This document shows, piece after piece, positions 1,441 through 37,045 of a DNA stretch of 64,000 bases. The notes beneath the pieces are model-generated. The model was not told where the DNA came from and did not search any database. It saw only the letters and a program-made list of their open reading frames with translations. The stretch lies in sequence record LR588166.1, one strand, 5' to 3'. The translations under genes and the position numbers were made by a program. Position 1 is the first letter of the stretch. Every line of letters starts with the position of its first letter.

Positions 1441-1935
1441 ATGATATTTCAAAAACCATTTATAGAATTGAATAGTATCCCAGATTACACTCATCCGGGC
1501 GGATTTGCATACCAACGAAAAAATCATATACACGAAGGCGTAGACCTTTATTGTAAAAATAAAGAACCTGTGTTTACAATGTTAACGGGTAAAGTAGTTA
1601 ATATAATAAAAGATTTTACAGGTCCGGGTTGTGGAACACCTTGGTGGAATAAAACAAGTGCAATAGTAATAGAAGACGTATTTGGTGTATGGGTATACGG
1701 CGAAATATTAGTAGGAAATTGGATTAACATAGGAGATACCGTACCAGCCGGAACATGTATCGGCAGAGTAGAACAAGTGTTAAAAAAGAACAAAGGACGT
1801 CCTATGTCTATGCTTCATGTAGAACGATATACAAAAGGAACTACAAATTCTATTGGTTTATGGCAATTAAACACCAGTAGACCTGAAAATTTATTAGATC
1901 CAACACCTTTGTTACGGCGTATCATAAATGAATAA
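1441..1935 (+). CDS. M23 family zinc metallopeptidase (peptidoglycan hydrolase-like)
   Basis: HEGVD (HxxxD) motif, V..G..V.AG..IG.V segment, MLHVE in place of HLHFE; alternative TTG start at 1396. Confidence 0.85.
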   Translation: MIFQKPFIELNSIPDYTHPGGFAYQRKNHIHEGVDLYCKNKEPVFTMLTGKVVNIIKDFTGPGCGTPWWNKTSAIVIEDVFGVWVYGEILVGNWINIGDTVPAGTCIGRVEQVLKKNKGRPMSMLHVERYTKGTTNSIGLWQLNTSRPENLLDPTPLLRRIINE

Positions 1936-2269
1936 TATATTATATATTCAGAATTTTATAAGAAGTAGAAAATTAGAAGCAGAATACGGATGTATAGTTA
2001 CCATTAATGATATTACAGGAGCTAGAGAATTTACAGCATATCATCTCAATAACTGGCATAATTGTTCATTTATATCCTATAATAATTGCAGTATAGATAT
2101 TATTGCATTATGTAACTATACACACACGATAGTATGTGGATCAGATAATGCAGGTTTTATAATAAACAATAATAACAGAAATATTCTACTGTCAGTAGTT
2201 TCTAACAAGACGTCATATTCGTCTTGTTATTCATCTTCTGTAATTATAAATATTTCTGTTTTATTATAA
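1928..2269 (+). CDS. AT-rich paralog family protein
   Basis: MNNILYIQN start; overlaps M23 stop. Confidence 0.6.
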   Translation: MNNILYIQNFIRSRKLEAEYGCIVTINDITGAREFTAYHLNNWHNCSFISYNNCSIDIIALCNYTHTIVCGSDNAGFIINNNNRNILLSVVSNKTSYSSCYSSSVIINISVLL

Positions 2270-2270
2270 A

Positions 2271-2594
2271 ATGAATTTAATATTTTGTATAGCTAGCATT
2301 GATAATATGCAAATAGGTATAGGCCGGTCAATCGGAGATATAAACAATATAATATATATTCGAACTAGCCCCTCTAATGATATAATCAAATATATAACAG
2401 AAGTAAAATATGGTAAAACAGTATCACTTATGTTAAATCTCGATATATCAGTATTTAAAGAATTATTTATTTTTATTTTGTCATGTAAATGTAAACACAT
2501 CACTGAACTAAGAATATACAATAAAGTAGTATTTTATTTTTATTCTGATACCAGAAGATCTTTAACAGATTTGTTATATTACATAGGTCGGTGA
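2271..2594 (+). CDS. AT-rich paralog family protein
   Basis: 107 aa, starts 1 nt after upstream stop. Confidence 0.6.
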   Translation: MNLIFCIASIDNMQIGIGRSIGDINNIIYIRTSPSNDIIKYITEVKYGKTVSLMLNLDISVFKELFIFILSCKCKHITELRIYNKVVFYFYSDTRRSLTDLLYYIGR

Positions 2595-2706
2595 CAGTAC
2601 ATTTACAGAAAAATATAATATCTTATGTATTATTCATTATAAAAACTCTGTTGTGTTATTAAGTGTTGTATGTTAGTGTGCAAGTTAATTAAATGCGGAA
2701 CATCAA

Positions 2707-3000
2707 ATGGATATTATTCTTTTTATATCAAATAATACATACTATATAACATCAACAAGTAATAGCACATTCTTATTATACAGATTTGATCAAAAATGTA
2801 TCTATGTTGTAACAAAACATCTTAATTCACACCCGGTAGTGATAGACGACGGAAGTAATGGTTGGGGGACAATATATGAGATTCCCGCACTAGTTCAGTT
2901 TTACACAGATATTTTTAAATTTTCTGTACATCACGAGTTAATTCAAATATATGTGCTCACAAAAGTAGGTCAATTTTTCTCTAAGATTGTTACTTACTAA
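2707..3000 (+). CDS. AT-rich paralog family protein
   Basis: MDIILFISNNTYYI motif. Confidence 0.7.
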   Translation: MDIILFISNNTYYITSTSNSTFLLYRFDQKCIYVVTKHLNSHPVVIDDGSNGWGTIYEIPALVQFYTDIFKFSVHHELIQIYVLTKVGQFFSKIVTY

Positions 3001-3322
3001 TATAATTGTACAATACATAGGCAATTTGATGGACAATATATTTTATATTTCGTACGAAATAGCTAGTTGCCGGTATTCTAGTCCAACTACATTTCAATTA
3101 ATTAATAAACACAATAGAGAATTTTATGCAATACGTTTGGCTGCAGGATACCCAAGCGACATTTTCGATTTTGATTGGAAACAAAAAATCTTATTAACGT
3201 CTAAATATTGTAATAAGCTTTTATTTCTTATTAGTAGAGAAAAGATACAGGTAACTACCAAGTTAAGGATATTTTATTGCCTTAGTAACGTATCTGCCAA
3301 ATCGGATCAAGTTACACTATGA
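2987..3322 (+). CDS. AT-rich paralog family protein
   Basis: 111 aa ORF; MDNIFYIS motif suggests a slightly downstream ATG. Confidence 0.55.
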   Translation: MLLTNIIVQYIGNLMDNIFYISYEIASCRYSSPTTFQLINKHNREFYAIRLAAGYPSDIFDFDWKQKILLTSKYCNKLLFLISREKIQVTTKLRIFYCLSNVSAKSDQVTL

Positions 3323-3831
3323 ATATCATACCATTAATTTTAATTAGTGTATACTAGTTATTGTGACACTATTAAATATGTCAATTAGATAAATTATTAA
3401 TGAAAAATCTATTTCCTACTGGATGCATATTTAATATATTGGTATTATCTTATCACACAGATACAATATATACTGTATGTTACTCAGATTGTCGTGTTAT
3501 TGCACTAAACAGTTATTATACATACTATATACCTTTAAATGACTAAATTAATACTTACAATTTCTATTAATACCAAACAGATAGCATTATTAAACGATGT
3601 TGTGCATTTTCGAAATTATAATAAAATAGTATACTTTATAAATTTTTTTATTTAAAACTAAGTCATTAATTATTATGGACAAGTTAATAACAGATAGTTT
3701 TATTATCATTTATATAAGTAAAAATTGCTCCGAAATTTATGTCACCCTCAGACATGCTTTTATATGCAATTACGATGGGGTTGGGTTTTTTAGATCATGA
3801 CTAGTTGTGTTAATTAGGATAACTATACTTA

Positions 3832-4125
3832 ATGAAATATGATTTTATATTACATATAAGTAATAACACAAATTGTATTATATTCGACACAAGTATTACC
3901 TTTGTTGGCAATAAAGGTATATTCTTTTATAAAATAATACCAATACACTTGCATAGTATGTGTAATTTTCCTTATATAGATAACAGTTGGTCAAACTATA
4001 TTTCATTACCTATAATTATACAATATTATACAAATAAACTGGTATATTTACCGTCTATTATACTTTTTCGTCAAAATAAATCTAATATATCAGCAGATAC
4101 TGTATTTCGTACAAATATGTTATGA
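3832..4125 (+). CDS. AT-rich paralog family protein
   Basis: FILHISNNTNCI motif. Confidence 0.7.
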   Translation: MKYDFILHISNNTNCIIFDTSITFVGNKGIFFYKIIPIHLHSMCNFPYIDNSWSNYISLPIIIQYYTNKLVYLPSIILFRQNKSNISADTVFRTNML

Positions 4126-4403
4126 ACGATGAATTAATACTATTGTTAAGTAAAGAGACTTATATAACTTCATTTTCTCATAACTGTGTAGACTTGTTCA
4201 GCGCTGCTGGAATTATATTTTATAGCATATCTATACCATACATGGGTTCCCGTGCTGCTAGCAGAATACATCATTTATATTTGTGTGTGTTTACACTATC
4301 TCCTTTTATAATACAATCATTTTGTCGTGTAATATTCGATAATAAGTATACAATTTGCATATCATATAACGGTACACTTATATGGAAAGGTCTTTACCAA
4401 TAA
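4122..4403 (+). CDS. AT-rich paralog family protein
   Basis: ATGA overlap; LILLLSKETYI. Confidence 0.7.
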   Translation: MNDELILLLSKETYITSFSHNCVDLFSAAGIIFYSISIPYMGSRAASRIHHLYLCVFTLSPFIIQSFCRVIFDNKYTICISYNGTLIWKGLYQ

Positions 4404-4472
4404 CTTTTTCAGTTGCTATAACATGCACAATGTGCAATAATAAAAAACAATGTGCAATTGTGAATAAAATAC

Positions 4473-4778
4473 ATGAATATTATCATTAACATTCAAGCAT
4501 CAACATCCGAAATCTTCTTTGACACAGACTGTATCACGTTAATAACGAGTTTAGGCGGTCATGTTCTTTCGATAAACCGAAGAACAGGAAAAGGCGCAGT
4601 TGTACTTCATAACATAAAGTTAGATTCCATATATCGTATTATACTATTACAGCACGCAACTGTATCACTTGTTGTATGGGGTGCTATAGACATTAAAGTA
4701 TCATTTAAAGACATAGCCGATGAATACATTTTCCTTGCTATAGGAAGAAGATATTATCACGGCGAATGGTTAAAATAA
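4473..4778 (+). CDS. AT-rich paralog family protein
   Basis: MNIIINIQASTSEI; internal ILLQH. Confidence 0.7.
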   Translation: MNIIINIQASTSEIFFDTDCITLITSLGGHVLSINRRTGKGAVVLHNIKLDSIYRIILLQHATVSLVVWGAIDIKVSFKDIADEYIFLAIGRRYYHGEWLK

Positions 4779-5050
4779 TTCTGACTATGCATAAAATTTA
4801 TTATGACGAAATTTTAGAAATATCTAAAAAAGCTAGATTAATTGTAAATTACTCTGGCATCGTTTCTATATACACAAAATCTTCTAATTATTATAATATA
4901 AATTATAATTTTTATAGTAATCCATTTAATCAGTGGAATAGGGCAATATTTATAGCATCTAAACAATGTGGACACATAGCATTTTCTAGTAACCGGATGC
5001 GTATATTAACTGATAAAAATATATTGTGGTATTATAGTACTCTTCTATAA
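4766..5050 (+). CDS. AT-rich paralog family protein
   Basis: 94 aa, overlaps upstream ORF. Confidence 0.6.
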   Translation: MVKIILTMHKIYYDEILEISKKARLIVNYSGIVSIYTKSSNYYNINYNFYSNPFNQWNRAIFIASKQCGHIAFSSNRMRILTDKNILWYYSTLL

Positions 5051-5065
5051 GGTATAGATCGAAAA

Positions 5066-5368
5066 ATGGAAATACCTAATGACAAGTGTATGTTGTTAAT
5101 ATTTCTGAGTAGTGTCTCCGATACTATACACATAGAAATCAGTTTTAGAAAAAGAATTAGAAAATATTTGCACACACTAAAAATATACAAAGAAGATAAC
5201 ATTTGCATATTTATAAATGGCATATTACTATTTAAAAAAGATATATGTAACGATATAATAATTCCTATTTTGATACAATCGAACACAAGATCTATATCAC
5301 TGCATAACGACTTCTTAGAAATATTTTCTAACAGATATTATTTGATGTTATTTAGAAAAATGTCTTAA
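5066..5368 (+). CDS. AT-rich paralog family protein
   Basis: internal ILIQSNTRSI. Confidence 0.65.
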   Translation: MEIPNDKCMLLIFLSSVSDTIHIEISFRKRIRKYLHTLKIYKEDNICIFINGILLFKKDICNDIIIPILIQSNTRSISLHNDFLEIFSNRYYLMLFRKMS

Positions 5369-5382
5369 ATAGGCAAAAATGC

Positions 5383-5634
5383 ATGATTGTTATACTTCTT
5401 TCACACTTTACACGTGAACTAAATGCAGAATTTAATGAATTAAAACTTACTGTACATGGTAAAAGATTAGCGCAAATATATCCGACAGCATACATAGATA
5501 CTAACGTCTTATGCCATTATATGCGTGAACTTGATTTCTTACTATTATACATTTCTAACAATGCAAAAACGATACAATTAGACTATTCACACAGAATAAT
5601 ATTATATCACTCTCCCATACCGCACTATATTTAA
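5383..5634 (+). CDS. AT-rich paralog family protein
   Basis: MIVILLSHFT; internal LLYISNNAKTI. Confidence 0.7.
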   Translation: MIVILLSHFTRELNAEFNELKLTVHGKRLAQIYPTAYIDTNVLCHYMRELDFLLLYISNNAKTIQLDYSHRIILYHSPIPHYI

Positions 5635-5646
5635 AGAGATAAGTAT

Positions 5647-6036
5647 GTGAACTATTATTCAAACAGTTGTTGTACAGAAACTACATTATTGAACTCTTTT
5701 AATGAGCAAGTTAATGTCCATCTAAACCCTATGTGCAACCTACCATTTATTATATCAAGTAATTCCCATAAACTAATCTACGGACAGTATTTTAACAATA
5801 CAAGAGGTCCAGGCATATACATTGCTAATATAAATGGAATTGTGTTTCTATGCTCTGTTGTTACTATTTCTAATTTTCGAATGTGTTTTAGTATGCTTAA
5901 TGAAATAGATCCTTTGTATATACAATACAAATGCGATTCAATAAAAACAATAAACACACTTACATATTATAGACTAAATGTCAATTCATTACTTAATACA
6001 ATGTTATGTAAAGAATATTATGAATTTAATACTTGA
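5647..6036 (+). CDS. AT-rich paralog family protein
   Basis: 129 aa; internal FIISSNSHKL and LYIQY. Confidence 0.6.
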   Translation: MNYYSNSCCTETTLLNSFNEQVNVHLNPMCNLPFIISSNSHKLIYGQYFNNTRGPGIYIANINGIVFLCSVVTISNFRMCFSMLNEIDPLYIQYKCDSIKTINTLTYYRLNVNSLLNTMLCKEYYEFNT

Positions 6037-6304
6037 ATTAGTAAGAAACACAAGTAAAATCATACCGCATGATGGTCTAAATGCTGCTAGATTTATTCTT
6101 GTTAATGCCTATTATATAAAAATAGCATCTTTTTGTTTATCATTTTCTACATGGACCAGCCAGACATTTTTAAGAATAAACCAGTTTCAAATGTCAGAAT
6201 CTACGTTAGTTATCATATCTAATAAAATAAAGAAGATCAAAAGAATGGAAAAATCATACGCTTTAATTTTTGACGAATCATATATCCGGTTGAAAATCGA
6301 ATGA
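6020..6304 (+). CDS. AT-rich paralog family protein
   Basis: MNLILELVRNTSKI at ATG 6020. Confidence 0.65.
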   Translation: MNLILELVRNTSKIIPHDGLNAARFILVNAYYIKIASFCLSFSTWTSQTFLRINQFQMSESTLVIISNKIKKIKRMEKSYALIFDESYIRLKIE

Positions 6305-6555
6305 TAATACATATCTCGCATTTAACAGATAAAATAAATGCATATTCTAAATATATAATCGTTACTAATAAAACCAATAAAATTATATTTTGCCATTGCA
6401 TGTATGGCCAAACTAAAATTTACATTAACAAAGTATTACCAAGTATCGACTTAATCTGTTATATTCAACATAACACAAAAACTATTAGTTATCCCATTGT
6501 AAATAGCCATTTTCTATTATATCCATATCTTTGCAATAATGCCTTGGTTGTATAA
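6301..6555 (+). CDS. AT-rich paralog family protein
   Basis: ATGA overlap; internal LICYIQHNTKTI. Confidence 0.7.
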   Translation: MIIHISHLTDKINAYSKYIIVTNKTNKIIFCHCMYGQTKIYINKVLPSIDLICYIQHNTKTISYPIVNSHFLLYPYLCNNALVV

Positions 6556-6557
6556 TT

Positions 6558-6839
6558 ATGGATTTTATTTTCCTACTACAACATAACACTTCTATTATAT
6601 TATATCGTAATAGTATTATAGAATTATACACAGAAGACGAAATGCCAGTAATAGACATAGATATAACAAATTCTATGTTCATATATCTAGGTATTTTTAA
6701 TGACAAAACTGCAATACTCTATCTACAACAAAATACACACAGTATAGGTATAGAATCATCAAATTCTTATTATATGATAAGAATGAGAAATATGTACCAT
6801 AGAAACGTTTATTATATTATAACACATGGACTATATTAA
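6558..6839 (+). CDS. AT-rich paralog family protein
   Basis: MDFIFLLQHNTSII; ILYLQQNTHSI. Confidence 0.75.
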   Translation: MDFIFLLQHNTSIILYRNSIIELYTEDEMPVIDIDITNSMFIYLGIFNDKTAILYLQQNTHSIGIESSNSYYMIRMRNMYHRNVYYIITHGLY

Positions 6840-7110
6840 ACTTATCTCCGCCGAAGTAAATCAAATTAAAAAATCTACCCATCCTGGTGGCACCCGCAAC
6901 GGCTTAACACTATATAACGTACATGACCAACCCATATTAGAAATAAAGATCCAAAAAATAATATCCCGTGTATATGTGCGTGCAAACTACGATAAGTTGT
7001 GTAATGAAATCTGCATTCTTCATATACAAAGTCAAACAACTTTAATATCTACCACACGGAACTCACTAGTAATCTTTACTTCCCACTATATAGTTTACTC
7101 TATCATATGA
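6826..7110 (+). CDS. AT-rich paralog family protein
   Basis: internal ILHIQSQTTLI. Confidence 0.7.
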   Translation: MDYIKLISAEVNQIKKSTHPGGTRNGLTLYNVHDQPILEIKIQKIISRVYVRANYDKLCNEICILHIQSQTTLISTTRNSLVIFTSHYIVYSII

Positions 7111-7397
7111 ACCTAATCCCCGCACTGCAAAATAAAACTAGATATATAACCCAATTTGATACTAATTTTGATACTACTTATCGTTTAATTAACTCAGATA
7201 GAAAATGCTTTTATCTTATAACACGCAAGAACAAAAAGACCATAGTAGACATAGACTATAATGTCTTCAATGATATTTTCGGTATATTACATTTACAGTC
7301 TAAAACACATATACTACAACGTTCATACTACCTAATAAAAATATATGATGTATGTACGGATTTAATATTTTTTATATACCACCATACCCATAAATGA
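7107..7397 (+). CDS. AT-rich paralog family protein
   Basis: MNLIPALQNKT; GILHLQSKTHI. Confidence 0.75.
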   Translation: MNLIPALQNKTRYITQFDTNFDTTYRLINSDRKCFYLITRKNKKTIVDIDYNVFNDIFGILHLQSKTHILQRSYYLIKIYDVCTDLIFFIYHHTHK

Positions 7398-7675
7398 AAT
7401 TTATTATAACATTACAATCATACACAACTACAATACAGTTTCTAACTAATGATTTTATATTATATTCTGATAGAAATAAATTATTAGAATTAGGTATATA
7501 CGATAACAAATTCAACTGTTACATACATATCAATAATTTTAATAATAACAATATAATCTTGTGTTATCTTCAGCATATAATTTATACAATACACATTCAT
7601 CCCTTTGTTTTATCGATGTGTAATAGTAATTGGTTATCAGTTAATACAAAATGTTATTCAAGAAGACTTTACTAA
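7394..7675 (+). CDS. AT-rich paralog family protein
   Basis: MKFIITLQSYT; LCYLQHIIYTI. Confidence 0.75.
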   Translation: MKFIITLQSYTTTIQFLTNDFILYSDRNKLLELGIYDNKFNCYIHINNFNNNNIILCYLQHIIYTIHIHPFVLSMCNSNWLSVNTKCYSRRLY

Positions 7676-7714
7676 AGCAATGAAGATGAATGATAGAAAT
7701 CACTACACTATAAC

Positions 7715-8236
7715 TAATGAGTGATAATACTCTAATAGATAGAAACTATAGTGTAACAACCAATGAGTGATAATACTAATACTGATAGATATAGCTATAG
7801 TGTACAAATAATGAGTGATAATACTTATAGATACTAATACTAAAATACTAATACTGAGATAGCTATAGTGTACAAATAATAAGTGAATTATATAGTACAT
7901 TCTTCGGTGAATAGTATTAATACCAATAGATAGTGATATAGATAGCTATAGTGTACAAATAATGAGTGAATTATATAGTACATATTTCGGTGAATACTGA
8001 TATAATATCAATAGATAGCTATAGTGTAACAAATAATGAATAATGTTGATTGATAATACCAATAGATAGTGAATAATGAGTGATACTTATAGAAGTGATA
8101 CTAATACCAATACTGATAGATAGCTATAGTGTACAAATAATGAGTGATACTGAGTGATACTAATAAGATAGTGATAGTGTACAAATAATAAGTGAATTAT
8201 ATAGTACATATTTCGGTGAACCCTAACATCACCGAA
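7715..8236. repeat. noncoding irregular direct-repeat array, core GATAGCTATAGTGTACAAATAAT(G/A)AGTGA
   Basis: Copies at ~7791, 7858, 7941, 8014, 8119, 8170; submotif AGTGAATTATATAGTACAT..TTCGGTGAA three times; ends in hairpin TTCGGTGA/TCACCGAA (8212-8236). Confidence 0.85.
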
Positions 8237-8606
8237 GAAAGAAGGACCAAAATTTTGGAAATCTTGCTCTATAGGTCCCATTCATTTTCTTCCCAGTTAC
8301 ATTTATATTCTTTCCATTTCTAACCATTTTTATAGATTTTTTTTGGAAAAATCCGTTTTCTGCTATATAGGGACCTTCTTATAAAATATAAGTTCTTTTT
8401 CAATAAAAAATATTTTTTTTTGAAAATTTCCAATTCTTGCTATATAGGCCGGTTTCATTATATATCCCCGTTTGCATAACATATACGGAATATAGTATGC
8501 TATACGTATATAAACCGTGACTCTAGTCAACTCACTTACTGTACGCTTGTTAGCTATTAGATATAATTCCATTTCGTAGTATAACGTATATACAGGAAAA
8601 CTGGTT

Positions 8607-8879
8607 ATGGATCTGATACTATTTCTTCAACATAATACTGTAGAGATAGACGAGTGTACATGGTTCATTCGTTTTAACAACAAAAATGAAAATAGTATAG
8701 CTATGATTTCTGATAACGGTTTTAAAATGTATTATGAAAATGTTAATAGCTTACTTGGCATTCTTCATTTACAATATTGTAATTATGATTTTTTATTCAA
8801 GTATATGGGCAATTATATTTCTTTTACATTTGTTAAAAATAATAGGTTTGTACATAAAATATATGCTGATTTGAAATAA
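8607..8879 (+). CDS. AT-rich paralog family protein
   Basis: MDLILFLQHNT; LGILHLQY. Confidence 0.8.
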   Translation: MDLILFLQHNTVEIDECTWFIRFNNKNENSIAMISDNGFKMYYENVNSLLGILHLQYCNYDFLFKYMGNYISFTFVKNNRFVHKIYADLK

Positions 8880-8882
8880 TAT

Positions 8883-9188
8883 ATGGATTTCATACTATTA
8901 CTTCAATCTCATTGCAATGAGATTGTATATACCAATCAAATCATTGATATGCTCAATGCGCATAATAGGCAGTTCGTATATGGAATTACGTTGCCTATGG
9001 GAAGAAAACATGTGTCATATAATGCATATTGTTTGTATAATAATTTATGTGATGTGATAGGATTATTGCATATGCAATCTATTCTATCATTAATAGAAGT
9101 TAAACATTTAAAAACATTTTCTGGTAAAACAGATATTATTGTTAATATGGTGTTTGTTAACGGTTATCTTCAACATGCTATATACTAA
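8883..9188 (+). CDS. AT-rich paralog family protein
   Basis: MDFILLLQSH; IGLLHMQS. Confidence 0.8.
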   Translation: MDFILLLQSHCNEIVYTNQIIDMLNAHNRQFVYGITLPMGRKHVSYNAYCLYNNLCDVIGLLHMQSILSLIEVKHLKTFSGKTDIIVNMVFVNGYLQHAIY

Positions 9189-9204
9189 TAGTTGTGTCTA
9201 ATAT

Positions 9205-9489
9205 ATGGACTTAATATTATTATTTCAGTCTCGTTGTTTTAAGATTTGGTATTCAGATTATATTATAGATATGATCGACTATAGTGATTATACTATAGTA
9301 TCATTACTACGCCCGCCGAATGGGCGTATGTATGCCTATTGTTCGTGTAATAGTATAAACAACGAAACTAGTATAATGCATTTGCAGAATAACATACATT
9401 CATTACAAATAAGTTATAGTACCCGTTCTATAATGTGTCGTATGACTAATTTGTATGAAGATCTAATTCAATATATTTGTATACTTTAG
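9205..9489 (+). CDS. AT-rich paralog family protein
   Basis: MDLILLFQSR; IMHLQNNIHSL. Confidence 0.8.
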   Translation: MDLILLFQSRCFKIWYSDYIIDMIDYSDYTIVSLLRPPNGRMYAYCSCNSINNETSIMHLQNNIHSLQISYSTRSIMCRMTNLYEDLIQYICIL

Positions 9490-9491
9490 TA

Positions 9492-9767
9492 ATGTATTTT
9501 ATCTTGTTTATACAGAAATTGTGTTGTTCAATTAGAAGGGCTTCGCACGGATTTGATATTTTTGATACAAATGAAGTAGCATATTCATTAATAGATCATC
9601 ATGGTTTCAGTATGAAACATTTCGTTTCATACTCTGTTATAAATGATGTAATAGGAATTATACATTTACAAGTGCATACAAATAAGTTATATTTTCTTCA
9701 TGAAAAACATCAAATGGATATGATTTGTTTTCTAGATAGTAAAGGCGGTCATTTTTTTAGTTTGTAG
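9492..9767 (+). CDS. AT-rich paralog family protein
   Basis: MYFILFIQK; IGIIHLQV. Confidence 0.8.
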   Translation: MYFILFIQKLCCSIRRASHGFDIFDTNEVAYSLIDHHGFSMKHFVSYSVINDVIGIIHLQVHTNKLYFLHEKHQMDMICFLDSKGGHFFSL

Positions 9768-9779
9768 AGGGCGGAATTT

Positions 9780-10043
9780 GTGCTATTAATATTAATGCTT
9801 CAGCGTAATGTCGAATGGATTCTTGATGTTGATTGCGAAATTCGACTTGTTCTGCCCGATTATAATACGTTATATCGTTTTCTAATTCAGATACAGAAAA
9901 TTAATGGGTATCTAAATTGCCATGCTAGTAATGACATTGTAGGTATGTTTTATTTACAGTACAATTGTGATACTATATCATTTGATAGATTTTATGAATT
10001 TATGATACTAAACCACAATGGCGTAACAATTTATGGCTGGTGA
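9780..10043 (+). CDS. AT-rich paralog family protein
   Basis: LILMLQRN; VGMFYLQY; GTG start. Confidence 0.75.
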   Translation: MLLILMLQRNVEWILDVDCEIRLVLPDYNTLYRFLIQIQKINGYLNCHASNDIVGMFYLQYNCDTISFDRFYEFMILNHNGVTIYGW

Positions 10044-10048
10044 CTAGT

Positions 10049-10339
10049 ATGGATATTATATTAATCCTTAGCAGTGAAGTTATAAGAATACAAGGTTGTT
10101 TTTATGATATAGAAACTTTACAAATAAGGTTCTTCAATAAATACGACTCAATATATTTTTGTAATAAAATGGGAGGATTTGTTAACTATAAAACATTTCC
10201 CAATGAACTACTAAGTATAATTCATTTGCAGCAGAATACACACAGGTTAATAACACACAGTAAATGTATATTTTTTGATAGTGTGGATTTTATTTCTATT
10301 CACTGGGAGACTTTGTTTGACACAAACGAATATGTATAA
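10049..10339 (+). CDS. AT-rich paralog family protein
   Basis: MDIILILSS; SIIHLQQNTHRL. Confidence 0.8.
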   Translation: MDIILILSSEVIRIQGCFYDIETLQIRFFNKYDSIYFCNKMGGFVNYKTFPNELLSIIHLQQNTHRLITHSKCIFFDSVDFISIHWETLFDTNEYV

Positions 10340-10343
10340 TGAT

Positions 10344-10570
10344 ATGAATTATATATTACTAATTAGTAACCAGTCTAAATATATTTCGTTGAAGGCACTT
10401 GGATTAACTGTAAACACACGTGATACAAGGTTATCTCATTATATTATATTTTAAATATGAACGAAGAATATGATATATTATATTTGTCTAACAATACTAT
10501 GCAAATAACATTTCGTTTTTCAGTATATTGTTTTTATGATAAAACTCGTAGTATTATATATTGTCAATAA
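10344..10570 (+). pseudogene. two-unit paralog split by a 1-nt frameshift, or two one-unit ORFs
   Basis: MNYILLISNQ (36 aa, stop at 10454) then MNEEYDILYLSNNT (ATG 10457); one extra T in the TTTT run would fuse them. Confidence 0.45.
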
Positions 10571-10583
10571 GACAGAAATATAA

Positions 10584-10898
10584 ATGGATTTAATATTAAC
10601 ACTTCAGCATAAAACTGTGCTAATATCACAGTTTAGTGCATTATTTGTATTTCAAAATATAAACAGTGATACTATATTTTGTTTGGATATAAGTAGACAT
10701 GTATATTATTTCGAAATAATATTCAGGTTATATAATAATAAGAATGGCATGGTGTATTTGCAACATGCCATTAATTCTATTAAGTTTACCTTTAGTTTAC
10801 AATATCATACAATTCGTGGATATTCTAGTATACCATCTATATATATGTATGATAAAAAATATGATATTGTACACGTACCATATGTTAGGAATACTTAA
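10584..10898 (+). CDS. AT-rich paralog family protein
   Basis: MDLILTLQHKT; GMVYLQH. Confidence 0.8.
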   Translation: MDLILTLQHKTVLISQFSALFVFQNINSDTIFCLDISRHVYYFEIIFRLYNNKNGMVYLQHAINSIKFTFSLQYHTIRGYSSIPSIYMYDKKYDIVHVPYVRNT

Positions 10899-11197
10899 TG
10901 GATCTTATATTATACATTCAGTACAGTGCTCATAAAATAGAAACTGTTTATAAATCATATCTATTTTATAGTAATAACTATTCACTTTATTACAGACTGT
11001 CTGTATATAAGAGATTATTGGTACCATCGGGTAGTGAATCATATGCAAGGGCTTCGGCTGAATATTCTGCTATTACAGACAAAATAGGAATTATACACTT
11101 ACAATCGAAAACACACGCAATATTATTTGTTATAGACAGTATGTGCATTCACGACAAATCGTATCAAACACTCCATTATATTATACTAAGGTCATAA
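10898..11197 (+). CDS. AT-rich paralog family protein
   Basis: MDLILYIQY; IGIIHLQSKTHAI. Confidence 0.8.
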   Translation: MDLILYIQYSAHKIETVYKSYLFYSNNYSLYYRLSVYKRLLVPSGSESYARASAEYSAITDKIGIIHLQSKTHAILFVIDSMCIHDKSYQTLHYIILRS

Positions 11198-14100
11198 TGT
11201 TTATAAGTTTTATTCCGCCTGTTGCAATGTTGATACGACTACAATCAAATCTACACATTATCTGTTTTGATTCTGTTTATAATAGTATAGTGTTTTGCGA
11301 TAAGGATTACGACGAAATACATTGCTGCTTATGGTAGCGTGTTTGCATTTAACGCAAAAACATGTTATACAGTATTGTTTGTTGAGTATTTTGACATTGT
11401 TGTTTCTAAAAATCTTTTATATAAAGGATTAATATGCATAATATATTTAAATTATCATATTGTACAAATATGTTTAAATTTAAAATATTATGGGATCAAA
11501 AAGTATACCTATGCTCGTTTATGTCATTGCGGTATACTACCCTATATATTTCTGCAGGTCGTATCAGATAAATGGTAACAAATATATTAGAATTAATGTA
11601 TGTATGTCACCATACATATAATATAACAACTAACGGCTACTATAACATTATCTTCTTAAATAAAGATAATAATATTATCTTTGTTTTGTATTAAAACAAA
11701 TGGGAATATTTCTCTTATCACGCAATACTTGCTACATTTGTGTTATACATGTCAGACGTATTGTATACAAGATTAAAATGTATGACAGACATGGCAATTA
11801 TGTGCGTACAATTAATGTTATCTAAGAACATATCAAATTATATAGAATTTTGTTGTATGTAATACTGTTTAATAATGGCATTAGATATTGATAAAATAAC
11901 ATACATTTCATTTAACTCATGCTATATATCAGTTAATTGTTTTAGTGTTATTATATATTATGAGTACGGTAGATTAATTTTATATGATGATACCCCCGGG
12001 CTTATATAAGAACGTATTCTACATACAGTATAATGTGCGTCATATCAGCATATATTATTTTGATGCATGCGAATGTAATATATTACAGGTAGAATGCAAT
12101 AATTTTCTTACTCTAACATATAAATTAAATGAAAAAACCAATAAGTAATATAGTTGAATTATCGCTTAATACGCACCAGTTTAATACCAATTATATAACT
12201 AGTGCTCATTGTTTAGTATTTTATAATGCGTCGTCATATCCTATACATTATGTTCGTTTACACACAAACAAGCGTTAACACTTATGTCGCCGGTATCAAT
12301 TCATAATATAGTTTGTATTCAACACTATCTTAATAGATGGTATACTAGAATATCCCCAACAGGGATTAATGTGTATTCAGATTCATATGTTAGAATTAGA
12401 ATAAATGTTCATAAATAAAAATATTATAAATCACGATATACATTATGATATGTTGCAGGTATCTTCGTGCGCACATAGAATAGATTCATCGCTATGTAGC
12501 ACATATCTATTGGCATGCATTTATAATAGTAATGAAAAAATTATTATAATTAGTGTTGCATATCTAAGATGAATGGCATGAAAGATATAATAGAATTTTC
12601 ATCGAATACATACGAAATATGTGCCAATACAGCAAGACTTAGAGATATAGTATACTACTCGATACTCATAAAGTCAAAAGACGGTCTTGCATTTTATATG
12701 GTAGACTCGTTTGCATATATAACATGACCAGTATCCTTGAATGTTCTTACAATACTTCTAATATTATGTTTCGTTTTTGTAAAAACAGTGACATTTTAGT
12801 TGTGAACTTTCTAAACAAAAATGCTAACATACATTTCATTGTAATAATTAGATACAAATAAACATATCGTTAATTACTAATACATAGGAGAGTAATAAAT
12901 GAATAGAGAAGCAAAGAAAAATGTTTCTGTATTTGTTATTCAGAATCATACTTTTAGAGTTCATGTTGTACGATATGATCCTGCGAGAATTTCAATATAT
13001 CTCTCACTTGTACATAATTGTGTTGCATCTTAAGAACTATATCTGTATAATGTAGGTTACATTTGCATGTATAGGATTATCTTTCATATAATATATGCTT
13101 ATTAACTATACGACATGTATTGAATTACTTTATAGTATTGTATGATTCGTAAAAATATAGTTCTAATATCACATAACACGTCAAAAATAATATTAGAAAG
13201 AAAAACAAGTAAAGTATTACGTGTTTCTATGTTTAAATCAATTGGAAAATACTACTACCATTATTATACGGCGTGTGGAAATATATAATGCAAGATCATC
13301 ATTTCACTACACTGTTGTATATGTCTAATCGTGCAGATAGAATAAAGATTTTTCGACAGCCTTCCTGTCTTATTGTATATATTAAGTCAGGTATGTTATA
13401 TATTAATAAACAATTTTTAAAATGTTAGAATATATAGATACTCTCAAATATAATTACATTTTAACTGTATGCAGCGGTGTAGAGTCTATATCATTTGAAT
13501 CATTTACTAGATCAGTAATATCAGTTTCCATAATATACAATAATATTACTATCTTTCCGTGTCAAACCACACGAACTATACTGTATGGTGTATAATCTTA
13601 TTTTTATTTCTTGTAATGTTTCTTTAATTAGTTTTTCTATTTTTAATAAAACATTTGAAGTTTATATTTATGGAAAAATGTTATTGGTAATTTATTATAC
13701 AGGACTGCGTATATGTTAGATGTATTGCTACGGTTCCAACGCAGAGTGGATACAATTAAGGTGGAGTTAATATGGCGTCACTTGCATTTTTATGAAAAAG
13801 CCGGCGAGGAGTTAGAGTTATTTCATATTATATTTCTGCCGCCCGATCACCGAAATATTAATTAACAAAAACAAGTTGTATTTTTCGGCATAAGAATTTA
13901 TGATTAAAGATACAAACAAAGAATCACCTATTATTAAAGAATTATATTTTATATTAAGATTGTAAGTAAAATAAAATACTTTTAGAATCTAAAACTAAAA
14001 TGATCGATTGGGTATTTAAATTGTCTGCTAGTTGCTACGAAATAGACGGACAACACAGTGAGTCAATAAGAATATATAATTCATATTGTCTTTTAGGAAC

Positions 14101-14472
14101 TATACAATGTTATTGTGCTCAGTTAAAAATAAATTTATATAAATTTTAATATTGTGGGAAGAATTCTTTTAAATAGGCATACTATATGAATGATCTATTA
14201 CAATACCAACTCACATTATGTTCCATATCTTTGCAGAAAGCTCGTTTTAAGTCAGGCAATGTGTATTACATTCTAATTGAACGTAACGACAGCGGTAGGT
14301 ATTCCCGAGATGTAAAAATACTTAAATGATATGCGTATATTTGTAATATCACAAAATTGCATGACTATCAGACTTTTTATCATACATATTTCATTAAAGA
14401 TGTAAATTATGATTCAATTTGTGTATTATATAAAACGAATAGCAGAATTGTAATACATCCGAGTTTTACAGT
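11197..14472 (+). other. run of roughly 20 coupled mini-ORFs (40-56 aa), mostly below the ORF-track cutoff
   Basis: Hand-translated examples: 11197 MFISFIPPVAMLIRLQSN, 12129-12278 MKKPISNIVELSLNT, 12284-12418 MSPVSIHNIVCIQH, MTSILECSYNTSNI, MIRKNIVLISHNTSKI, MLDVLLRFQRRVDTI. Confidence 0.6.
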
Positions 14473-14474
14473 AG

Positions 14475-14672
14475 ATGAATATATTCGATCTGTCTTATAA
14501 TTCTTCATTTATTTTGATGAAATCGAATAGAATATACATTAGTAATGATACCTATTATAATTATTCTGTAGGCGCTACATATGTATTACCTGCAATAACA
14601 AAATATATACATCAAACATTCTATGTAAACGCTGCAATATATAGATTTTTAGATACAGGTATACTAGTATGA
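14475..14672 (+). CDS. one-unit paralog family protein
   Basis: MNIFDLSYNSSFI. Confidence 0.65.
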   Translation: MNIFDLSYNSSFILMKSNRIYISNDTYYNYSVGATYVLPAITKYIHQTFYVNAAIYRFLDTGILV

Positions 14673-14857
14673 AATTCAATATATTTAAATTGCAAAGAGG
14701 ATGTCACTTTATAGATTGTCATTTTTATGACATTCTTAGATTTTCAAAACCTACATATTTTCGAGATGCTGATAGAATAACTATATTTTCATTAATAGGT
14801 ACTAATAGTATCGGAATTTACGCGGATATGTATAAAGGATATGCACAAACCATATGA
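14669..14857 (+). CDS. one-unit paralog family protein
   Basis: MKFNIFKLQRGCHFI; overlaps upstream stop. Confidence 0.65.
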   Translation: MKFNIFKLQRGCHFIDCHFYDILRFSKPTYFRDADRITIFSLIGTNSIGIYADMYKGYAQTI

Positions 14858-15138
14858 TTGAAATATTAATATTTTCGAGTGTTAGTGATTATATTAATAT
14901 AAGCCATGATATGGCACGGCTATATAATCTTAATGGTGTTAGTGAATTAATATTTGCATCAAAACCATACAAGTATATTGTATTAACTAATTTAAAAAAT
15001 CGTATAGGTATATTTTGTATTTCAAATATAATAAGTGAAAGGGTGATGGGAGATATTACTAGTAATGAATGTTGGGCTTATCCTTGGCCTCCAGATACTG
15101 GCATAGATGTATATATTGATTTCCTGTATAAAAATTGA
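14854..15138 (+). CDS. AT-rich paralog family protein
   Basis: MIEILIFSS; GIFCISN. Confidence 0.65.
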   Translation: MIEILIFSSVSDYINISHDMARLYNLNGVSELIFASKPYKYIVLTNLKNRIGIFCISNIISERVMGDITSNECWAYPWPPDTGIDVYIDFLYKN

Positions 15139-16610: not shown

Positions 16611-16627
16611 GCAGATATTCTCTTATT

Positions 16628-16753
16628 CACTTCCTTATTCATTTCCTTATTCATCTCTATTTCATTTGTCACTTCCTTATTCATTTCCTTATTCATCTCT
16701 ATTTCATTTGTCACTTCCTTATTCATTTCCTTATTCATCTCTATTTCATTTGT
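16628..16753. repeat. 3 x 42-bp pyrimidine-rich tandem repeat
   Basis: Unit CACTTCCTTATTCATTTCCTTATTCATCTCTATTTCATTTGT at 16628, 16670, 16712. Confidence 0.9.
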
Positions 16754-17254: not shown

Positions 17255-17959
17255 ATGTCCGTACATATCACTCGTCAACGTACCGACAAGCAGCACGTCC
17301 TGGCACTGGCAATCAACGGCGTGGTCATCGGCCAGACGATGGCTACTTACACCACCCCGAGCAAGCGCACCTGGTCGGCGACCGCCGAAGTCGAGCTGGC
17401 AGACGGCACTGTCGTTCAGTTCGAGCAGAAAGAAGTGTTCAGCGCGATCCGCATCACCCGCGAAATCGAGCAGGCGCTCGACGGCAAGGAACTGGCGGCC
17501 AAGTACACCCCGGAACCGAAAGTTCCCGGGCAGAAGGGTCCGAAACCGCTCACCGACGAAAGCCGGCTCAGCAACGCGATCGCGATCGTCAAGGCGGCCA
17601 TCACCCACACCGGCTTCGACGAAGCTACCCTGGTGTTCGACGGGGTCGACAAGGCCAACTTCGAGCAGAACAGCACTTCCGTCGGCAACAAGCTGCGTCG
17701 CCTGGGCTTCGTCTTCGAACTCGGCGCCGGCAAGGCGAACAGCGGCAAGGGCTTCCTGATCAACCGCAAAGCGCAGGCCGAGGCAGAAGCCGACGAACGT
17801 AAGGCCAAGCGCGAAGCCGAGAAGAAGGAACGCGAAGAAAAAGCGGCGGCTGCCAAGCGCGAAGCCGACGAACGTAAGGCCAAGCGCGAAGCCGAGCGCG
17901 CCGAAAAGGTCGCTGAAAAGAACGCAGCGATCACCGGGGCAGCACAGGAAAGCAAGTAA
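17255..17959 (+). CDS. VFSAIRI-family protein 1 with a second domain and Ala/Lys/Glu coiled-coil tail
   Basis: 234 aa, GAGG RBS, GC-rich host-like codons; homologous to 36150 and 42554. Confidence 0.85.
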   Translation: MSVHITRQRTDKQHVLALAINGVVIGQTMATYTTPSKRTWSATAEVELADGTVVQFEQKEVFSAIRITREIEQALDGKELAAKYTPEPKVPGQKGPKPLTDESRLSNAIAIVKAAITHTGFDEATLVFDGVDKANFEQNSTSVGNKLRRLGFVFELGAGKANSGKGFLINRKAQAEAEADERKAKREAEKKEREEKAAAAKREADERKAKREAERAEKVAEKNAAITGAAQESK

Positions 17960-23774: not shown

Positions 23775-24269
23775 GTGTTCGAGATGGAGCAAATAGTGAA
23801 TATGCGAGAAGTGACATTTCTTTCCGCAGTGGATGCCAGCAAGATCGAGACGCCGAGCAACGTCATCAGCATCGGCAGCAAGGGTGATTGGTATGCCTTT
23901 GCCTGCGATCACAAGCGCGTTCTGCGGCTGGAGTTTGATGACGTAGACGGATACGTGGGAAGCGATGGCTTTCGAGTGTTCAGCCACATTGACGCCAAGC
24001 AGATCCACGACTTCGTGAACGAGTGTGGTGATGAACCGATCATTGTTCACTGCCAAGCAGGCATGAGCCGATCCGCTGCGGTTGCCAAGTTCCTGGCTGA
24101 CAAGCGCGGCTACACGTTGAACCTGTCGAAGCCTTGCCTTGGAACCACGCAATTCTACAACCGCCACGTCTACGGAACGTTGAACCTCAACGACGCCGAA
24201 AGCATGAGCGCCTATTACGCAGAGATGGAGCTAGCCGACCGGCTGCGCGGCCATCCAAAGGAGTCCTAA
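23775..24269 (+). CDS. protein-tyrosine/dual-specificity phosphatase-like protein
   Basis: IIVHCQAGMSRS = HCX5R(S/T) P-loop; GC-rich. Confidence 0.85.
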   Translation: MFEMEQIVNMREVTFLSAVDASKIETPSNVISIGSKGDWYAFACDHKRVLRLEFDDVDGYVGSDGFRVFSHIDAKQIHDFVNECGDEPIIVHCQAGMSRSAAVAKFLADKRGYTLNLSKPCLGTTQFYNRHVYGTLNLNDAESMSAYYAEMELADRLRGHPKES

Positions 24270-24271
24270 TC

Positions 24272-24571
24272 ATGCCTGACATGAGAGAAGAGTTTGAAGC
24301 CGCAATCTTTGCGGAAGTGAATGAACAGCGGGCTGCTGAAGGTGAATTTGTCCTTCAGCATCCAGAAGGGCTATTTGCCCGCGATGACGATGGCTCCTAC
24401 TTGATCCGTTGGGTCAAGAGCGCATGGTGGGCCTGGCAAGCCAGCCGCGCAGCTCTGAGAGTGGAGTTGCCGAAACCTCACCCTGCATTTGAGTACGCAC
24501 CTAGAGCCAAGGTTTTCAATATAACTGACGTTGAGGTAGCCCTCCAGCAAGCCGGAATCGAGGTGAAGTGA
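24272..24571 (+). CDS. Pseudomonas prophage-type hypothetical protein
   Basis: AAGGAG RBS; MREEFEA...AWWAWQASRAALRVELP pattern. Confidence 0.8.
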   Translation: MPDMREEFEAAIFAEVNEQRAAEGEFVLQHPEGLFARDDDGSYLIRWVKSAWWAWQASRAALRVELPKPHPAFEYAPRAKVFNITDVEVALQQAGIEVK

Positions 24572-24718
24572 ATGAGAACGCCCATCTTCATCGGCGGATC
24601 AATTGGCATAGGAATCGCCTATCTGATGAATCCTGAATATCCCGCTATCGCGCTTGCAATGGTGTTTAGCGCGGGTACCTCATTGTTCATTCACTATCTA
24701 TCTGAGGTATGGCCATGA
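24572..24718 (+). CDS. small membrane protein (48 aa)
   Basis: Hand translation MRTPIFIGGSIGIGIAYL...; coupled at both ends. Confidence 0.6.
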   Translation: MRTPIFIGGSIGIGIAYLMNPEYPAIALAMVFSAGTSLFIHYLSEVWP

Positions 24719-24789
24719 CCGACCACGCAGAGCTGCGGAGGCTGGCTAAAGAAGTGATCCGAATTGAACGAAATGAGGATGCAGCATGA
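24715..24789 (+). pseudogene. truncated Ead/Ea22-like N-terminus (24 aa)
   Basis: MTDHAELRRLAKEV... then stop overlapping the next ATG. Confidence 0.4.
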
Positions 24790-25322
24790 GCATTGACTGG
24801 ACCAAGGCACCAGAGGGTGCGACGCACTACCAACCGGAATCACGCGGCTTCCATGCGGCATGGTTCCGACTTCAAGGGGGGAAGGCTCGCGAAATGTGGG
24901 TCGTGAGACCCAGCCGCGCGCTTGAGCACATCATCGATCCGACTGTCTTCGACGAGAGCATGCAGAACCTGATCGCCCGCCCCGTAGAAGCTGCCACCTG
25001 GAACGGCCAGGGTCTACCGCCGGTTGGCCTGATGGTGGAGTGGAAGGCAGGCCTTGATCACGACTGGCAGCGCGTAACTGTGCTTGCCTACGCCAATGGC
25101 GACGCGTGGTTTCAGCCCGAGGATGGCCCGTCTTTCATCGTCGGCAACCCGGCAAACTTCAGGCGTATCCGCACCCCCGAGCAGTTGGCCGCCGAGGAGC
25201 GGGAAAAGGCGATTAATCAGATGATTTCTGATGCTGGATACGTAGATCCGAAGATTGGCACATTTGTGGCTATGCGCAATCTCTACGACGCCGGCTACCG
25301 GCGCCGGGAGGAAGGGAAATGA
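24786..25322 (+). CDS. Pseudomonas phage hypothetical protein (MSIDWTKAPEGATHY family)
   Basis: Characteristic N-terminus and GLPPVG / RTPEQLAAEERE segments. Confidence 0.85.
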   Translation: MSIDWTKAPEGATHYQPESRGFHAAWFRLQGGKAREMWVVRPSRALEHIIDPTVFDESMQNLIARPVEAATWNGQGLPPVGLMVEWKAGLDHDWQRVTVLAYANGDAWFQPEDGPSFIVGNPANFRRIRTPEQLAAEEREKAINQMISDAGYVDPKIGTFVAMRNLYDAGYRRREEGK

Positions 25323-25585
25323 GCAGACTGACCGCTGAGCAAGCCCGTGACATAGCGCGAGCGAAAGACGATGTCGATACTATCCTCAACGACATCGCCA
25401 AAGCAGCCGCAGAAGGAAAGTACGTGTACACTACCCGCGCCTATGGGTTCGGCACAGGCGGCGGGCGGCGCAGCGACGCGATCCTCAAAGTGTTGCGTAG
25501 CCTCGGCTACGACTGTGCGGTGCATGCTGAGGGACGCCAGTCTGTTGACCTGTGGCTTGAAGTGAAATGGGGAGACAAGCCATGA
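25319..25585 (+). CDS. hypothetical protein
   Basis: ATGA overlap, GC-rich codons. Confidence 0.8.
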   Translation: MSRLTAEQARDIARAKDDVDTILNDIAKAAAEGKYVYTTRAYGFGTGGGRRSDAILKVLRSLGYDCAVHAEGRQSVDLWLEVKWGDKP

Positions 25586-25944: not shown

Positions 25945-26129
25945 CCGACATTAAAAAGCTGAAGGAGTTAGCGGAACGGGCTACTCCTGGTCCCTGGTCT
26001 GCGTCTTGGAAGGAAGGCGATGACCATTTGGGGCGAATTGCTTACTTCGTGTCAACTGGTCAATACAACATCACAAAAGAAACAGTCTTCGACATAGTGA
26101 ATGTGGTTCCCGAAAATGTGTGCTCCTGA
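25941..26129 (+). pseudogene. second Ead/Ea22-like copy, short or frameshifted
   Basis: LKELAERATPGPW N-terminus, early stop, lacks ANP..VL.LLDE C-terminus. Confidence 0.45.
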
Positions 26130-34799: not shown

Positions 34800-35234
34800 A
34801 AAGGAAGGGGGTTTAACCCCTTCCTTTTATTGTAGGTGTTAAATGTCATCAATTTTTTATCTTAGCAAATGGACAGAATACATAGTAATTTTAAACAATA
34901 AGAGAATAAGGTTAAGTACAGCGAAATATTCTATAGGATATGTATCACTAGAAACACCTCGTCGCACATTTTACTGGACACTTTTTAAATGAAATACAAT
35001 AATCATATCTAAGTAGATACCTACCTTTATATCAAAAACTATTTTATGAAATATATTTCCTAAATCATATTACAAAAGTTATATTTGAATTTCGGATTCA
35101 TATCTCAACCTTGCATTGCAATATAAAATGCGAATATGAGTGTGCTATATGTATTTGCATATGCATGTACATACGCATAAACGTATTAAGAAATACAATT
35201 TATTTTATCCTATACAATTATCTTTAATACCTAT

Positions 35235-36617: not shown

Positions 36618-36630
36618 GCGCTGCTAACAC

Positions 36631-36745: not shown

Positions 36746-36785
36746 GTGCTTAGCAGTAACACATAACTAGCAGGAGCAATAGACA

Positions 36786-37034: not shown

Positions 37035-37045
37035 GGAGAGACACC

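Follow-up and report, generated by a model that had tools for sequence, protein, structure and literature searches.

Evidence for an old tandem family of small two-unit proteins, apparently restricted to PA5oct-like jumbo phages

Background

The terminal repeats of some large virulent phages contain clusters of small early or host-takeover genes, such as the host-takeover module of SPO1 and the pre-early genes of T5; the members of these clusters are unrelated to one another and come with strong promoters and ribosome-binding sites. In large eukaryotic DNA viruses, fast-evolving terminal multigene families form the so-called genomic accordion and are thought to serve host interaction. The closest described case to the locus studied here is the Bacillus jumbo phage G, which carries a lineage-specific expansion of about 35 copies of a zinc-ribbon protein (Iyer et al. 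2021, PMC7824862). Here, we investigated a 64,000-nucleotide stretch of sequence record LR588166.1 (positions 186001-250000; hereafter the window, whose own numbering is used unless MIJ3 genome coordinates are stated) and focused on a dense array of small open reading frames (ORFs) at 1928-15138, for which a preliminary description had proposed the massive tandem expansion of one small protein module.

The window corresponds, with 100% identity, to Pseudomonas phage vB_PaeM_MIJ3 (LR588166.1), a PA5oct-like jumbo phage, and also matches ten PA5oct-like jumbo phage records at 94-97% (nine other phages, PA5oct being present twice), all from the single genus Wroclawvirus of the family Arenbergviridae. 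PA5oct has a 39,080-bp direct terminal repeat and has been characterised by RNA-seq and virion proteomics (PMC7318152). The word "paralog" is absent from the PA5oct and MIJ3 genome papers, nothing on the array appears in the Avs5, Paride and phage-determinant papers, and the jumbo-phage survey that described the phage G expansion cites PA5oct only for DNA-modification enzymes (PMC7824862). Our analyses indicate that the locus is very probably a real, translated and genus-restricted family of paralogs. What is new is a protein family without known relatives; the kind of system, a lineage-specific multigene family of a jumbo phage, is already known.

Results and discussion

A tandem array built from one repeated unit

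The array comprises 49 plus-strand ORFs of 40-129 amino acids (aa) that cover 85% of the region, and 21 of 48 starts overlap the preceding ORF while 12 more lie within 20 nucleotides (nt) of it, which bears out the many coupled small ORFs seen in the preliminary description. From base composition, chance ORFs at 27% GC would average about a dozen codons. To identify family members, profiles of the whole protein and of the unit were built from an alignment of ten obvious members and searched against stop-to-stop translations of all six frames, with the minus strand serving as a decoy and with GTG and TTG start codons translated as M. All 35 unit matches of at least 10 bits in the window were on the plus strand. 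In the whole 288-kb MIJ3 genome, with a unit threshold that kept minus-strand hits at or below 5%, the profile converged at 48 plus-strand units versus three minus-strand decoys. Thirty-nine of the 48 lie at 2.7-14.0 kb of the window (one an off-frame false match), and 38-39 units sit in 25 ORFs; of the others, six are located upstream at MIJ3 172.8-186 kb (before, among and after the tRNA genes) and three elsewhere. If a lineage-specific expansion is taken as at least three detectable homologs that are adjacent and on the same strand, the array offers 25 such ORFs with units, including 14 clear two-unit genes.

This decoy-calibrated threshold was needed, as a full-length two-unit profile stalled at 16 genes and a strict unit profile at 30 units. 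Pairwise phmmer searches at E <1e-4 connected only eight members because the paralogs are too divergent, and no further family of small ORFs was found by pairwise searches.

Each unit spans about 40-45 residues and starts with a 12-residue motif. Among the 48 aligned units, the most frequent residues of this motif were I at position 2 (85%), L or I at position 5 (95%), Q (68%) or S (32%) at position 6, N at position 8 (52%), T at position 9 (52%) and I at position 12 (83%), which reproduces exactly the motif first described. The two-unit architecture was likewise recovered in the 14 genes of the family core, where an N-type unit is always followed by a C-type unit (Table 1). Since this order is common to all 14 genes, the within-gene duplication appears older than the gene amplification. 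Core proteins vary between paralogs in net charge (-4 to +5) and isoelectric point (4.7 to 9.3), and the unit has no conserved Cys/His columns and no zinc ribbon.

Table 1. Features of the array and associated elements in the window
Feature	Position	Strand	Remarks
Left half of array	1928..7675	+	19 ORFs, 41-129 aa
Left-half ORFs with a firm unit (12)	2707, 3675, 3832, 4122, 4473, 5066, 5383, 6301, 6558, 6826, 7107, 7394	+	Unit profile
Family core	6301..11197	+	14 two-unit genes, 84-104 aa, N-type then C-type unit; split by the gap at 7676-8606
Non-coding gap	7676..8606	.	Splits the array; degenerate ~64-nt direct repeats, five copies at 7789-8229
Right part of core	8607..11197	+	8 two-unit genes; first genes inside the terminal repeat; orthologs of PA5oct gp2-gp10
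Representative two-unit member	9205..9489	+	94 aa; structure model
Truncated single-unit copy	within 10424-10567	+	Inside the core block
Short-ORF series	11143..15138	+	23 ORFs, mostly 40-65 aa (94 aa for the final one); stop and start codons often overlap
Short-series ORFs with a firm unit	11143, 11700, 12129, 14000	+	Unit profile; most others start with a weak unit motif
Possible solitary unit	34843..34989	+	21.5 bits; inside the terminal repeat

Similarity fades away from the core. In the left part (1928-6304), 8 of 11 non-core ORFs scored above the 95th percentile of shuffled sequences, and the ORFs starting at 1928, 2271, 4766 and 5978 did not match the unit profile. To the right, the short ORFs at 11.5-15.1 kb were mostly sub-threshold, with 13 of 21 above the shuffled 95th percentile versus 4 of 21 for reversed sequences; the short ORFs at 11143-15138 are probably single-unit derivatives of the family. 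With so many short ORFs below threshold, the more than 50 copies originally counted are best read as an upper estimate. Two further clusters of copies, proposed at 18.0-18.4 kb and 48.5-52.3 kb, found no support, since only 1 of 6 ORFs (18.0-19.2 kb) and 2 of 16 ORFs (48.2-52.5 kb) were marginally above shuffles. The latter region (48265-52418) consists of about 16 small plus-strand ORFs (55-85 aa, 28-29% GC) just outside the right boundary of the terminal repeat, with no detectable kinship to the array or to one another; embedded among them is a gene at 50264-50638 that is called "N4 gp14-like" in the PA5oct annotation.

Selection acts on the encoded proteins

We next compared the array ORFs with their counterparts in Paride, Callisto and PA5oct, relatives that share ancestry and thus do not provide independent comparisons. 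The Nei-Gojobori ratio of nonsynonymous to synonymous substitution rates (dN/dS) of the array in frame was 0.54 (Paride), 0.58 (Callisto) and 0.47 (PA5oct), versus 0.63-0.94 in the two other frames and 0.02-0.04 for the adjacent M23 peptidase gene. Among profile-supported genes, constraint was concentrated in the 12 motif codons (0.26-0.35) relative to the remaining codons (0.57-0.61), and the short-ORF series at 11143..15138 gave 0.44-0.47. This cross-phage test, suggested in the preliminary description, hence returned protein-level constraint.

Stop codons were avoided as well. When the observed number and spectrum of substitutions were placed at random (2000 simulations), 16.7, 18.2 and 7.5 new in-frame stops were expected for Paride, Callisto and PA5oct, respectively, and 0, 1 and 1 were observed; the simulations never reached the observed value for Paride and Callisto, and did so in 0.6% of cases for PA5oct. 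The left part at 1928-6304 behaved similarly (0 and 1 stops versus 7.4 and 8.5 expected), as did the core taken separately, and the effect was weaker for the short ORFs (0, 0 and 1 versus 2.5-3.7). Full-length intact counterparts were present for 41 of 49 ORFs in Paride, 37 of 49 in Callisto and 28 of 30 in PA5oct. Interrupted counterparts numbered three, three and two, respectively, the rest of the non-intact ones having diverged ends; six of the interruptions are insertions or deletions that are not a multiple of three (ORF 14357 in each relative, 5647 in two of them and 11339 in one), and two interrupted counterparts lack any gap. The copies have thus been kept as genes rather than pseudogenes, with weaker evidence for the short ORFs.

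The family alignment points in the same direction. Across 38 aligned units, the conserved residues carried 0.65-1.34 bits at codon positions 1 and 2 and 0.02-0.37 bits at position 3. Together, the stop avoidance, the codon-position pattern and the dN/dS values show that selection acts on the protein. Stop-codon recoding and a polyprotein reading were both rejected: most neighbouring ORFs occupy different frames and overlap from stop to start, all three stop codons occur in the array (30 TAA, 15 TGA and 4 TAG), and no suppressor is found among the 12 phage tRNAs.

Base composition and signals for expression

At 27% GC (26-28%), the array is the lowest-GC block of a genome that averages 33%. Its synonymous codon use, nevertheless, equals that of 83 long phage genes, with ATA at 57% versus 56% of Ile, TTA at 45% versus 50% of Leu, AGA at 49% versus 48% of Arg, and GC at third codon positions (GC3) of 0.22 versus 0.23; the heavy use of ATA, TTA and AGA noted before is therefore real and is genome-wide, not special to the array. 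What differs is the amino acids: the array is enriched in I, Y, F, C and H (Ile 13.9% vs 7.5%, Tyr 8.4% vs 4.6%, Cys 3.0% vs 0.8%, His 3.6% vs 1.5%) and holds few Ala, Gly, Glu and Pro, and its GC at codon positions 1 and 2 is 0.32 and 0.29 versus 0.44 and 0.37. The extra AT of the array thus derives from amino-acid composition, since the synonymous sites are alike.

Shine-Dalgarno sites are mostly absent, as had been noticed. A 4-mer core was found upstream of 6 of 49 array starts, compared with 33-36% of the long genes, 55% of the other ORFs of the terminal repeat and 2.7% of random positions. Such scarcity, combined with starts that overlap the preceding stop, suggests that translation is coupled and probably weak. 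No exact TTGAC-N16-19-TATAAT site occurs in the array, and a consensus promoter scan was uninformative in DNA this AT-rich (188 sites vs 153 expected). Strong early transcription together with strong translation signals, as in modules of the SPO1 and T5 type, was not found for the array in these scans and among the early genes named for PA5oct (PMC7318152).

Several genes elsewhere in the phage relate to translation. A cluster of 12 tRNA genes at MIJ3 174830-185243, upstream of the window, adjoins the phage tilS; the phage encodes tRNA-Leu(TAA) twice, tRNA-Arg(TCT) and three tRNAs with a CAT anticodon in addition to TilS, a set that suits TTA, AGA and ATA, i.e., codons favoured phage-wide and avoided by the 66% GC host. 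Ribosomal protein S21 is encoded by rpsU at MIJ3 78219-78425, near clpX and two 6-carboxytetrahydropterin synthase genes, in a region (75-88 kb) that also contains folE and, at 80-88 kb, clpS, ftsH and clpP. The phage S21 could bear on the translation of Shine-Dalgarno-poor messages.

One further candidate for expression evidence proved unusable. A "gp450" is called early in both versions of the PA5oct study (PMC7318152; bioRxiv 10.1101/406421), and the family member at 4473-4778 would have EST35_0450 as its ortholog. The early cluster was renumbered between the two versions from gp97-186 to gp34-105, while "gp450" kept its number, so that it cannot be equated with EST35_0450.

The array at the boundary of the terminal repeat

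Position 1 of PA5oct, and hence the left start of its terminal repeat, aligns at window 8230, and the right end of the repeat aligns at about 47.97-48.02 kb. By homology to the PA5oct annotation, the array thus straddles the left boundary of the repeat, with 1928-7675 outside it, as the rightmost part of the unique region, and 8607-15138, containing the orthologs of PA5oct gp2-gp33, inside. Further into the repeat, PA5oct gp34-gp105 are highly transcribed early genes at 5 min post infection (PMC7318152).

The gap that splits the array contains direct repeats that are 61-89% identical, overlapping and irregularly spaced at 48-178 nt; the final copy runs up to 8229, right at the start of the PA5oct record and of its terminal repeat. 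The repeat block as a whole spans 7689-8240, a short inverted repeat crosses the start point of the terminal repeat, and the block may be a packaging or end-definition signal. For Paride and Deifobo, the database records label the repeats at 7.7-8.2 kb "CRISPR", which looks like a mis-call considering their degeneracy, ~64-nt length, overlap and irregular spacing. Directly after the right end of the PA5oct repeat there is a perfect 46-bp tandem repeat of 4.4 copies (48022-48222); both boundaries therefore abut tandem-repeat blocks, and the outer sides of both are AT-rich small-ORF regions.

These features invite the idea, also raised in the preliminary description, that the DNA itself is functional and the coding incidental, with the array acting as a sink for MvaT/MvaU-type silencers, as expendable padding that protects the genome end from degradation, or as a component of the apparatus for packaging and terminal repeats. 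The array is indeed the lowest-GC block, flanks the repeat boundary on both sides and lies next to true DNA repeats of the kind present at both boundaries. Yet the coding part has no DNA-level repeats, and the repeats that possibly serve packaging sit in the non-coding gap, not in the genes; GC3 equals that of other genes and the whole phage is already AT-rich, so that the array departs from its surroundings only from 33% to 27% GC. Because constraint is seen at the protein level, with stop codons avoided and conservation at codon positions 1 and 2 rather than 3, a DNA-only role is disfavoured, and we regard it as very improbable.

The remainder of the terminal repeat differs in composition and content. 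Three GC-rich islands (49-55% GC) at 24000-26000, 36000-38000 and 46000-48000 look like modules acquired from host-adapted phages, and the stretch at 15.2-40 kb has matches in 165 further records of Pseudomonas phages, temperate ones such as JBD88b among them. The repeat also contains three paralogous GC-rich ORFs (17255-17959, 36150-36617 and 42554-42991), the first of which is the ortholog of a PA5oct virion protein seen by mass spectrometry and has a 27-bp tandem repeat near its C-terminal end. A perfect 42-bp tandem repeat of three copies (16627-16753) lies inside an ORF labelled "extensin-like" in PA5oct, just downstream of the equivalent of ncRNA001, which was reported to be highly transcribed throughout PA5oct infection.

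An old and stable expansion

Between isolates, orthologs in the array are about 95% identical at the DNA level, and the gene order is unchanged in Paride, Callisto, Deifobo and PA5oct. The one difference noticed in gene content is an extra gene-length unit at window ~6518-6866 in Paride, Callisto and Deifobo, compared with MIJ3 and PA5oct. Between copies, pairwise protein identity among the 17 best members is 16-38% (median 28%) with no close pairs, and low DNA identity was confirmed, as only two paralog pairs share 52-78 nt at 73-75%. Divergent paralogs without close pairs and in fixed order show that the expansion is old and stable, with occasional unequal exchange only.

An alternative is that the array is a relic. 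The family could have been amplified once and now be mostly relaxed, its frames kept open because a long AT-rich polycistronic message has to be translated continuously, for instance so that transcription does not end early, or the mRNA decay, before downstream genes are reached; the right-hand short ORFs would then be decayed halves of former two-unit genes. Several observations fit such a relic, namely the gulf in dN/dS between the array and the neighbouring M23 peptidase gene, the drift of amino acids toward AT-rich codons such as those of Ile and Tyr (seen also in the low GC at codon positions 1 and 2), the fading of similarity toward both array ends, one truncated copy and two or three interrupted counterparts per relative, and the rarity of Shine-Dalgarno sites, which suggests low output. 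However, the motif is still clearly purified and survives divergence to ~28% identity in at least 38 units, whereas a need for open frames would by itself leave individual residues free to change. The order and number of genes are, in addition, nearly fixed across Paride, Callisto, Deifobo and PA5oct. Overall, we consider this explanation somewhat unlikely.

Relatives and predicted fold

No curated cut-off was reached when ten members were searched against Pfam-A and PHROGs and 17 members against PADLOC, and PDB sequences gave no match even with E values up to 10. The window had no match in Rfam, and one family member had none in IMG/VR. An exhaustive profile search of 1.84 billion representative proteins returned 18 matches at E ≤0.001, of which 17 are 82-105 aa long. 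Five of the 18 matches were inspected as sequences: four are phage-like small proteins and one (P0010; 801 aa, 10 matched stretches) was set aside as an unrelated tandem-repeat protein that merely resembles the motif. A word-indexed search of 5.8 billion clusters gave 11 matches, the named ones all from Wroclawvirus phages and the others from unnamed assemblies. On these database searches, the family appears confined to the genus Wroclawvirus (PA5oct-like phages), with the same high confidence that we attach to its being real and translated.

Structure prediction, which had been suggested together with a fold search, yielded a helix-plus-strand model and no significant fold match. The AlphaFold2 model of the member at 9205-9489 (17-row alignment) has a mean predicted local distance difference test score (pLDDT) of 71.4 and a predicted template modeling score of 0.59, with pLDDT of 83-95 in the first unit and below 50 at residues 73-88. 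It predicts a helix at residues 2-10, which coincides with the conserved motif, strands at 13-17, 20-24, 30-35 and 43-47, a second helix at 54-63 and strands at 66-72 and 87-93. A model of a second member (36 rows) was poor (pLDDT 47.9) and has the same order of elements. The unit may therefore be described as a short amphipathic helix that contains the motif followed by three or four beta strands.

The top PDB fold match was the DNA-binding domain of T4 MotA (1kaf and 5jlt), with a Foldseek probability of 0.80-0.89, a template modeling (TM) score of 0.43-0.44 and 97-98 aligned columns of ~104. This raises the alternative that the proteins are DNA-binding factors of the MotA C-terminal "double-wing" type, a large set that would regulate transcription or coat DNA. 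The MotA domain and the family members are alike in being small alpha/beta proteins with two repeats, and a DNA-binding role was suggested for the phage G zinc-ribbon expansion (Iyer et al. 2021, PMC7824862). The match is nevertheless not significant (E 0.09-0.15, root-mean-square deviation above 5 A, identity 8-11%), no PDB sequence match accompanies it, the second half of the model is of low confidence, and only every second core protein is basic, the others being neutral or acidic, which leads us to hold DNA binding of this type to be quite improbable. The best BFVD matches were unit-length and involved Gp475, Gp476, Gp484 and Gp100 of Bacillus phage G, again without significance (E 0.05-0.24).

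A putative repertoire of small binders

Taken together, we propose that the ancestral gene already had two units, so that its product would be a pseudo-dimer within one chain, and that an ancient amplification turned it into more than 25 genes arranged head to tail on the same strand. These would have diverged to their present low identity while retaining length, open frame and the 12-residue motif, which we take as the structural core; the remainder, presumably the surface, would drift or diversify. Single-unit products of the right-end genes could pair as homo- or heterodimers and so rebuild the two-unit fold, and the genes would be translated mostly by coupling within long polycistronic messages, probably at a low level.

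As for the role, the array may provide a repertoire of small binders for host interaction, i.e., takeover, counter-defence or competitor exclusion. This suggestion comes from context: next to the array lies the early part of the terminal repeat, where PA5oct also encodes gp52, a proven inhibitor of END nucleases (anti-END1) (PMC12191111). The diversified protein repertoire envisaged in the preliminary description fits the selected open frames, the motif conserved at codon positions 1 and 2 and the variable charge. For the whole account, a lineage-specific tandem family of small proteins including the binder role, we see an even chance of its being right. A more elaborate version, in which pairing of two-unit and single-unit proteins would create a combinatorial binder library with many surfaces on one helix-plus-sheet scaffold, appears unlikely to us; such a library would be held at the genome end to meet variable host factors, with diversity generated by gene multiplication rather than by targeted mutagenesis.

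A number of observations weigh against the proposed account. A dN/dS of about 0.5 is only modestly under the out-of-frame controls, measured in relatives of shared descent, and much of each protein may be near neutral; among the short ORFs, homology and stop avoidance are both weak. Model confidence is low for the second unit of the member at 9205-9489 and throughout the model of the other member, and Foldseek searches against PDB and BFVD returned nothing at E ≤0.001. No match to a known anti-defence, defence or host-takeover family was obtained in Pfam, PHROGs and PADLOC, and none of the sequence or fold matches in these databases, PDB or BFVD points to an anti-defence or decoy role. Lastly, the array orthologs gp1-33 are absent from the highly transcribed early genes listed in the PA5oct paper (PMC7318152), and none of their products was reported in virions in the stretch of PA5oct that was read.

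Recognising one family would reduce some 50 "hypothetical proteins" to a single question, and it means that ~5% of the genome of PA5oct-like phages, which are model jumbo phages and therapy candidates against Pseudomonas aeruginosa, belongs to one unannotated family. The array also offers an example of an old, stable small-protein expansion that is kept open by selection in DNA where mutation easily makes stops. If the proteins bind host factors, they would constitute a large, naturally diversified set on one scaffold.

Comparison with known systems

The zinc-ribbon expansion of phage G resembles the array in that a small module, confined to the phage's own lineage, occurs in tens of copies in a jumbo phage, and the best, though not significant, unit-level BFVD matches are also phage G proteins. 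The array differs in its unit, predicted to be a helix plus beta strands and not a zinc ribbon, and in its arrangement as one contiguous same-strand array over the terminal-repeat boundary that grades from two-unit to single-unit genes. T4 MotA has a C-terminal domain (1kaf, 5jlt) of similar size and, according to the model, a similar two-repeat alpha/beta layout, but it shares no sequence similarity with the family, whose charge is variable rather than basic, and the fold match remains at E 0.09-0.15. With the SPO1 and T5 modules, the array shares many small genes on one strand in or next to a long, early-expressed terminal repeat; unlike them, it is one paralogous family with few Shine-Dalgarno sites, half of it lies beyond the repeat, and it does not figure in the list of highly transcribed early genes. 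The genomic accordion is a conceptual parallel only: both involve tandem paralogs near a genome end, and isolates of PA5oct-like phages show one gene-length difference in copy number, whereas the array has no recent duplicates (all pairs ≤38% identical), is old and stable, and encodes unrelated proteins.

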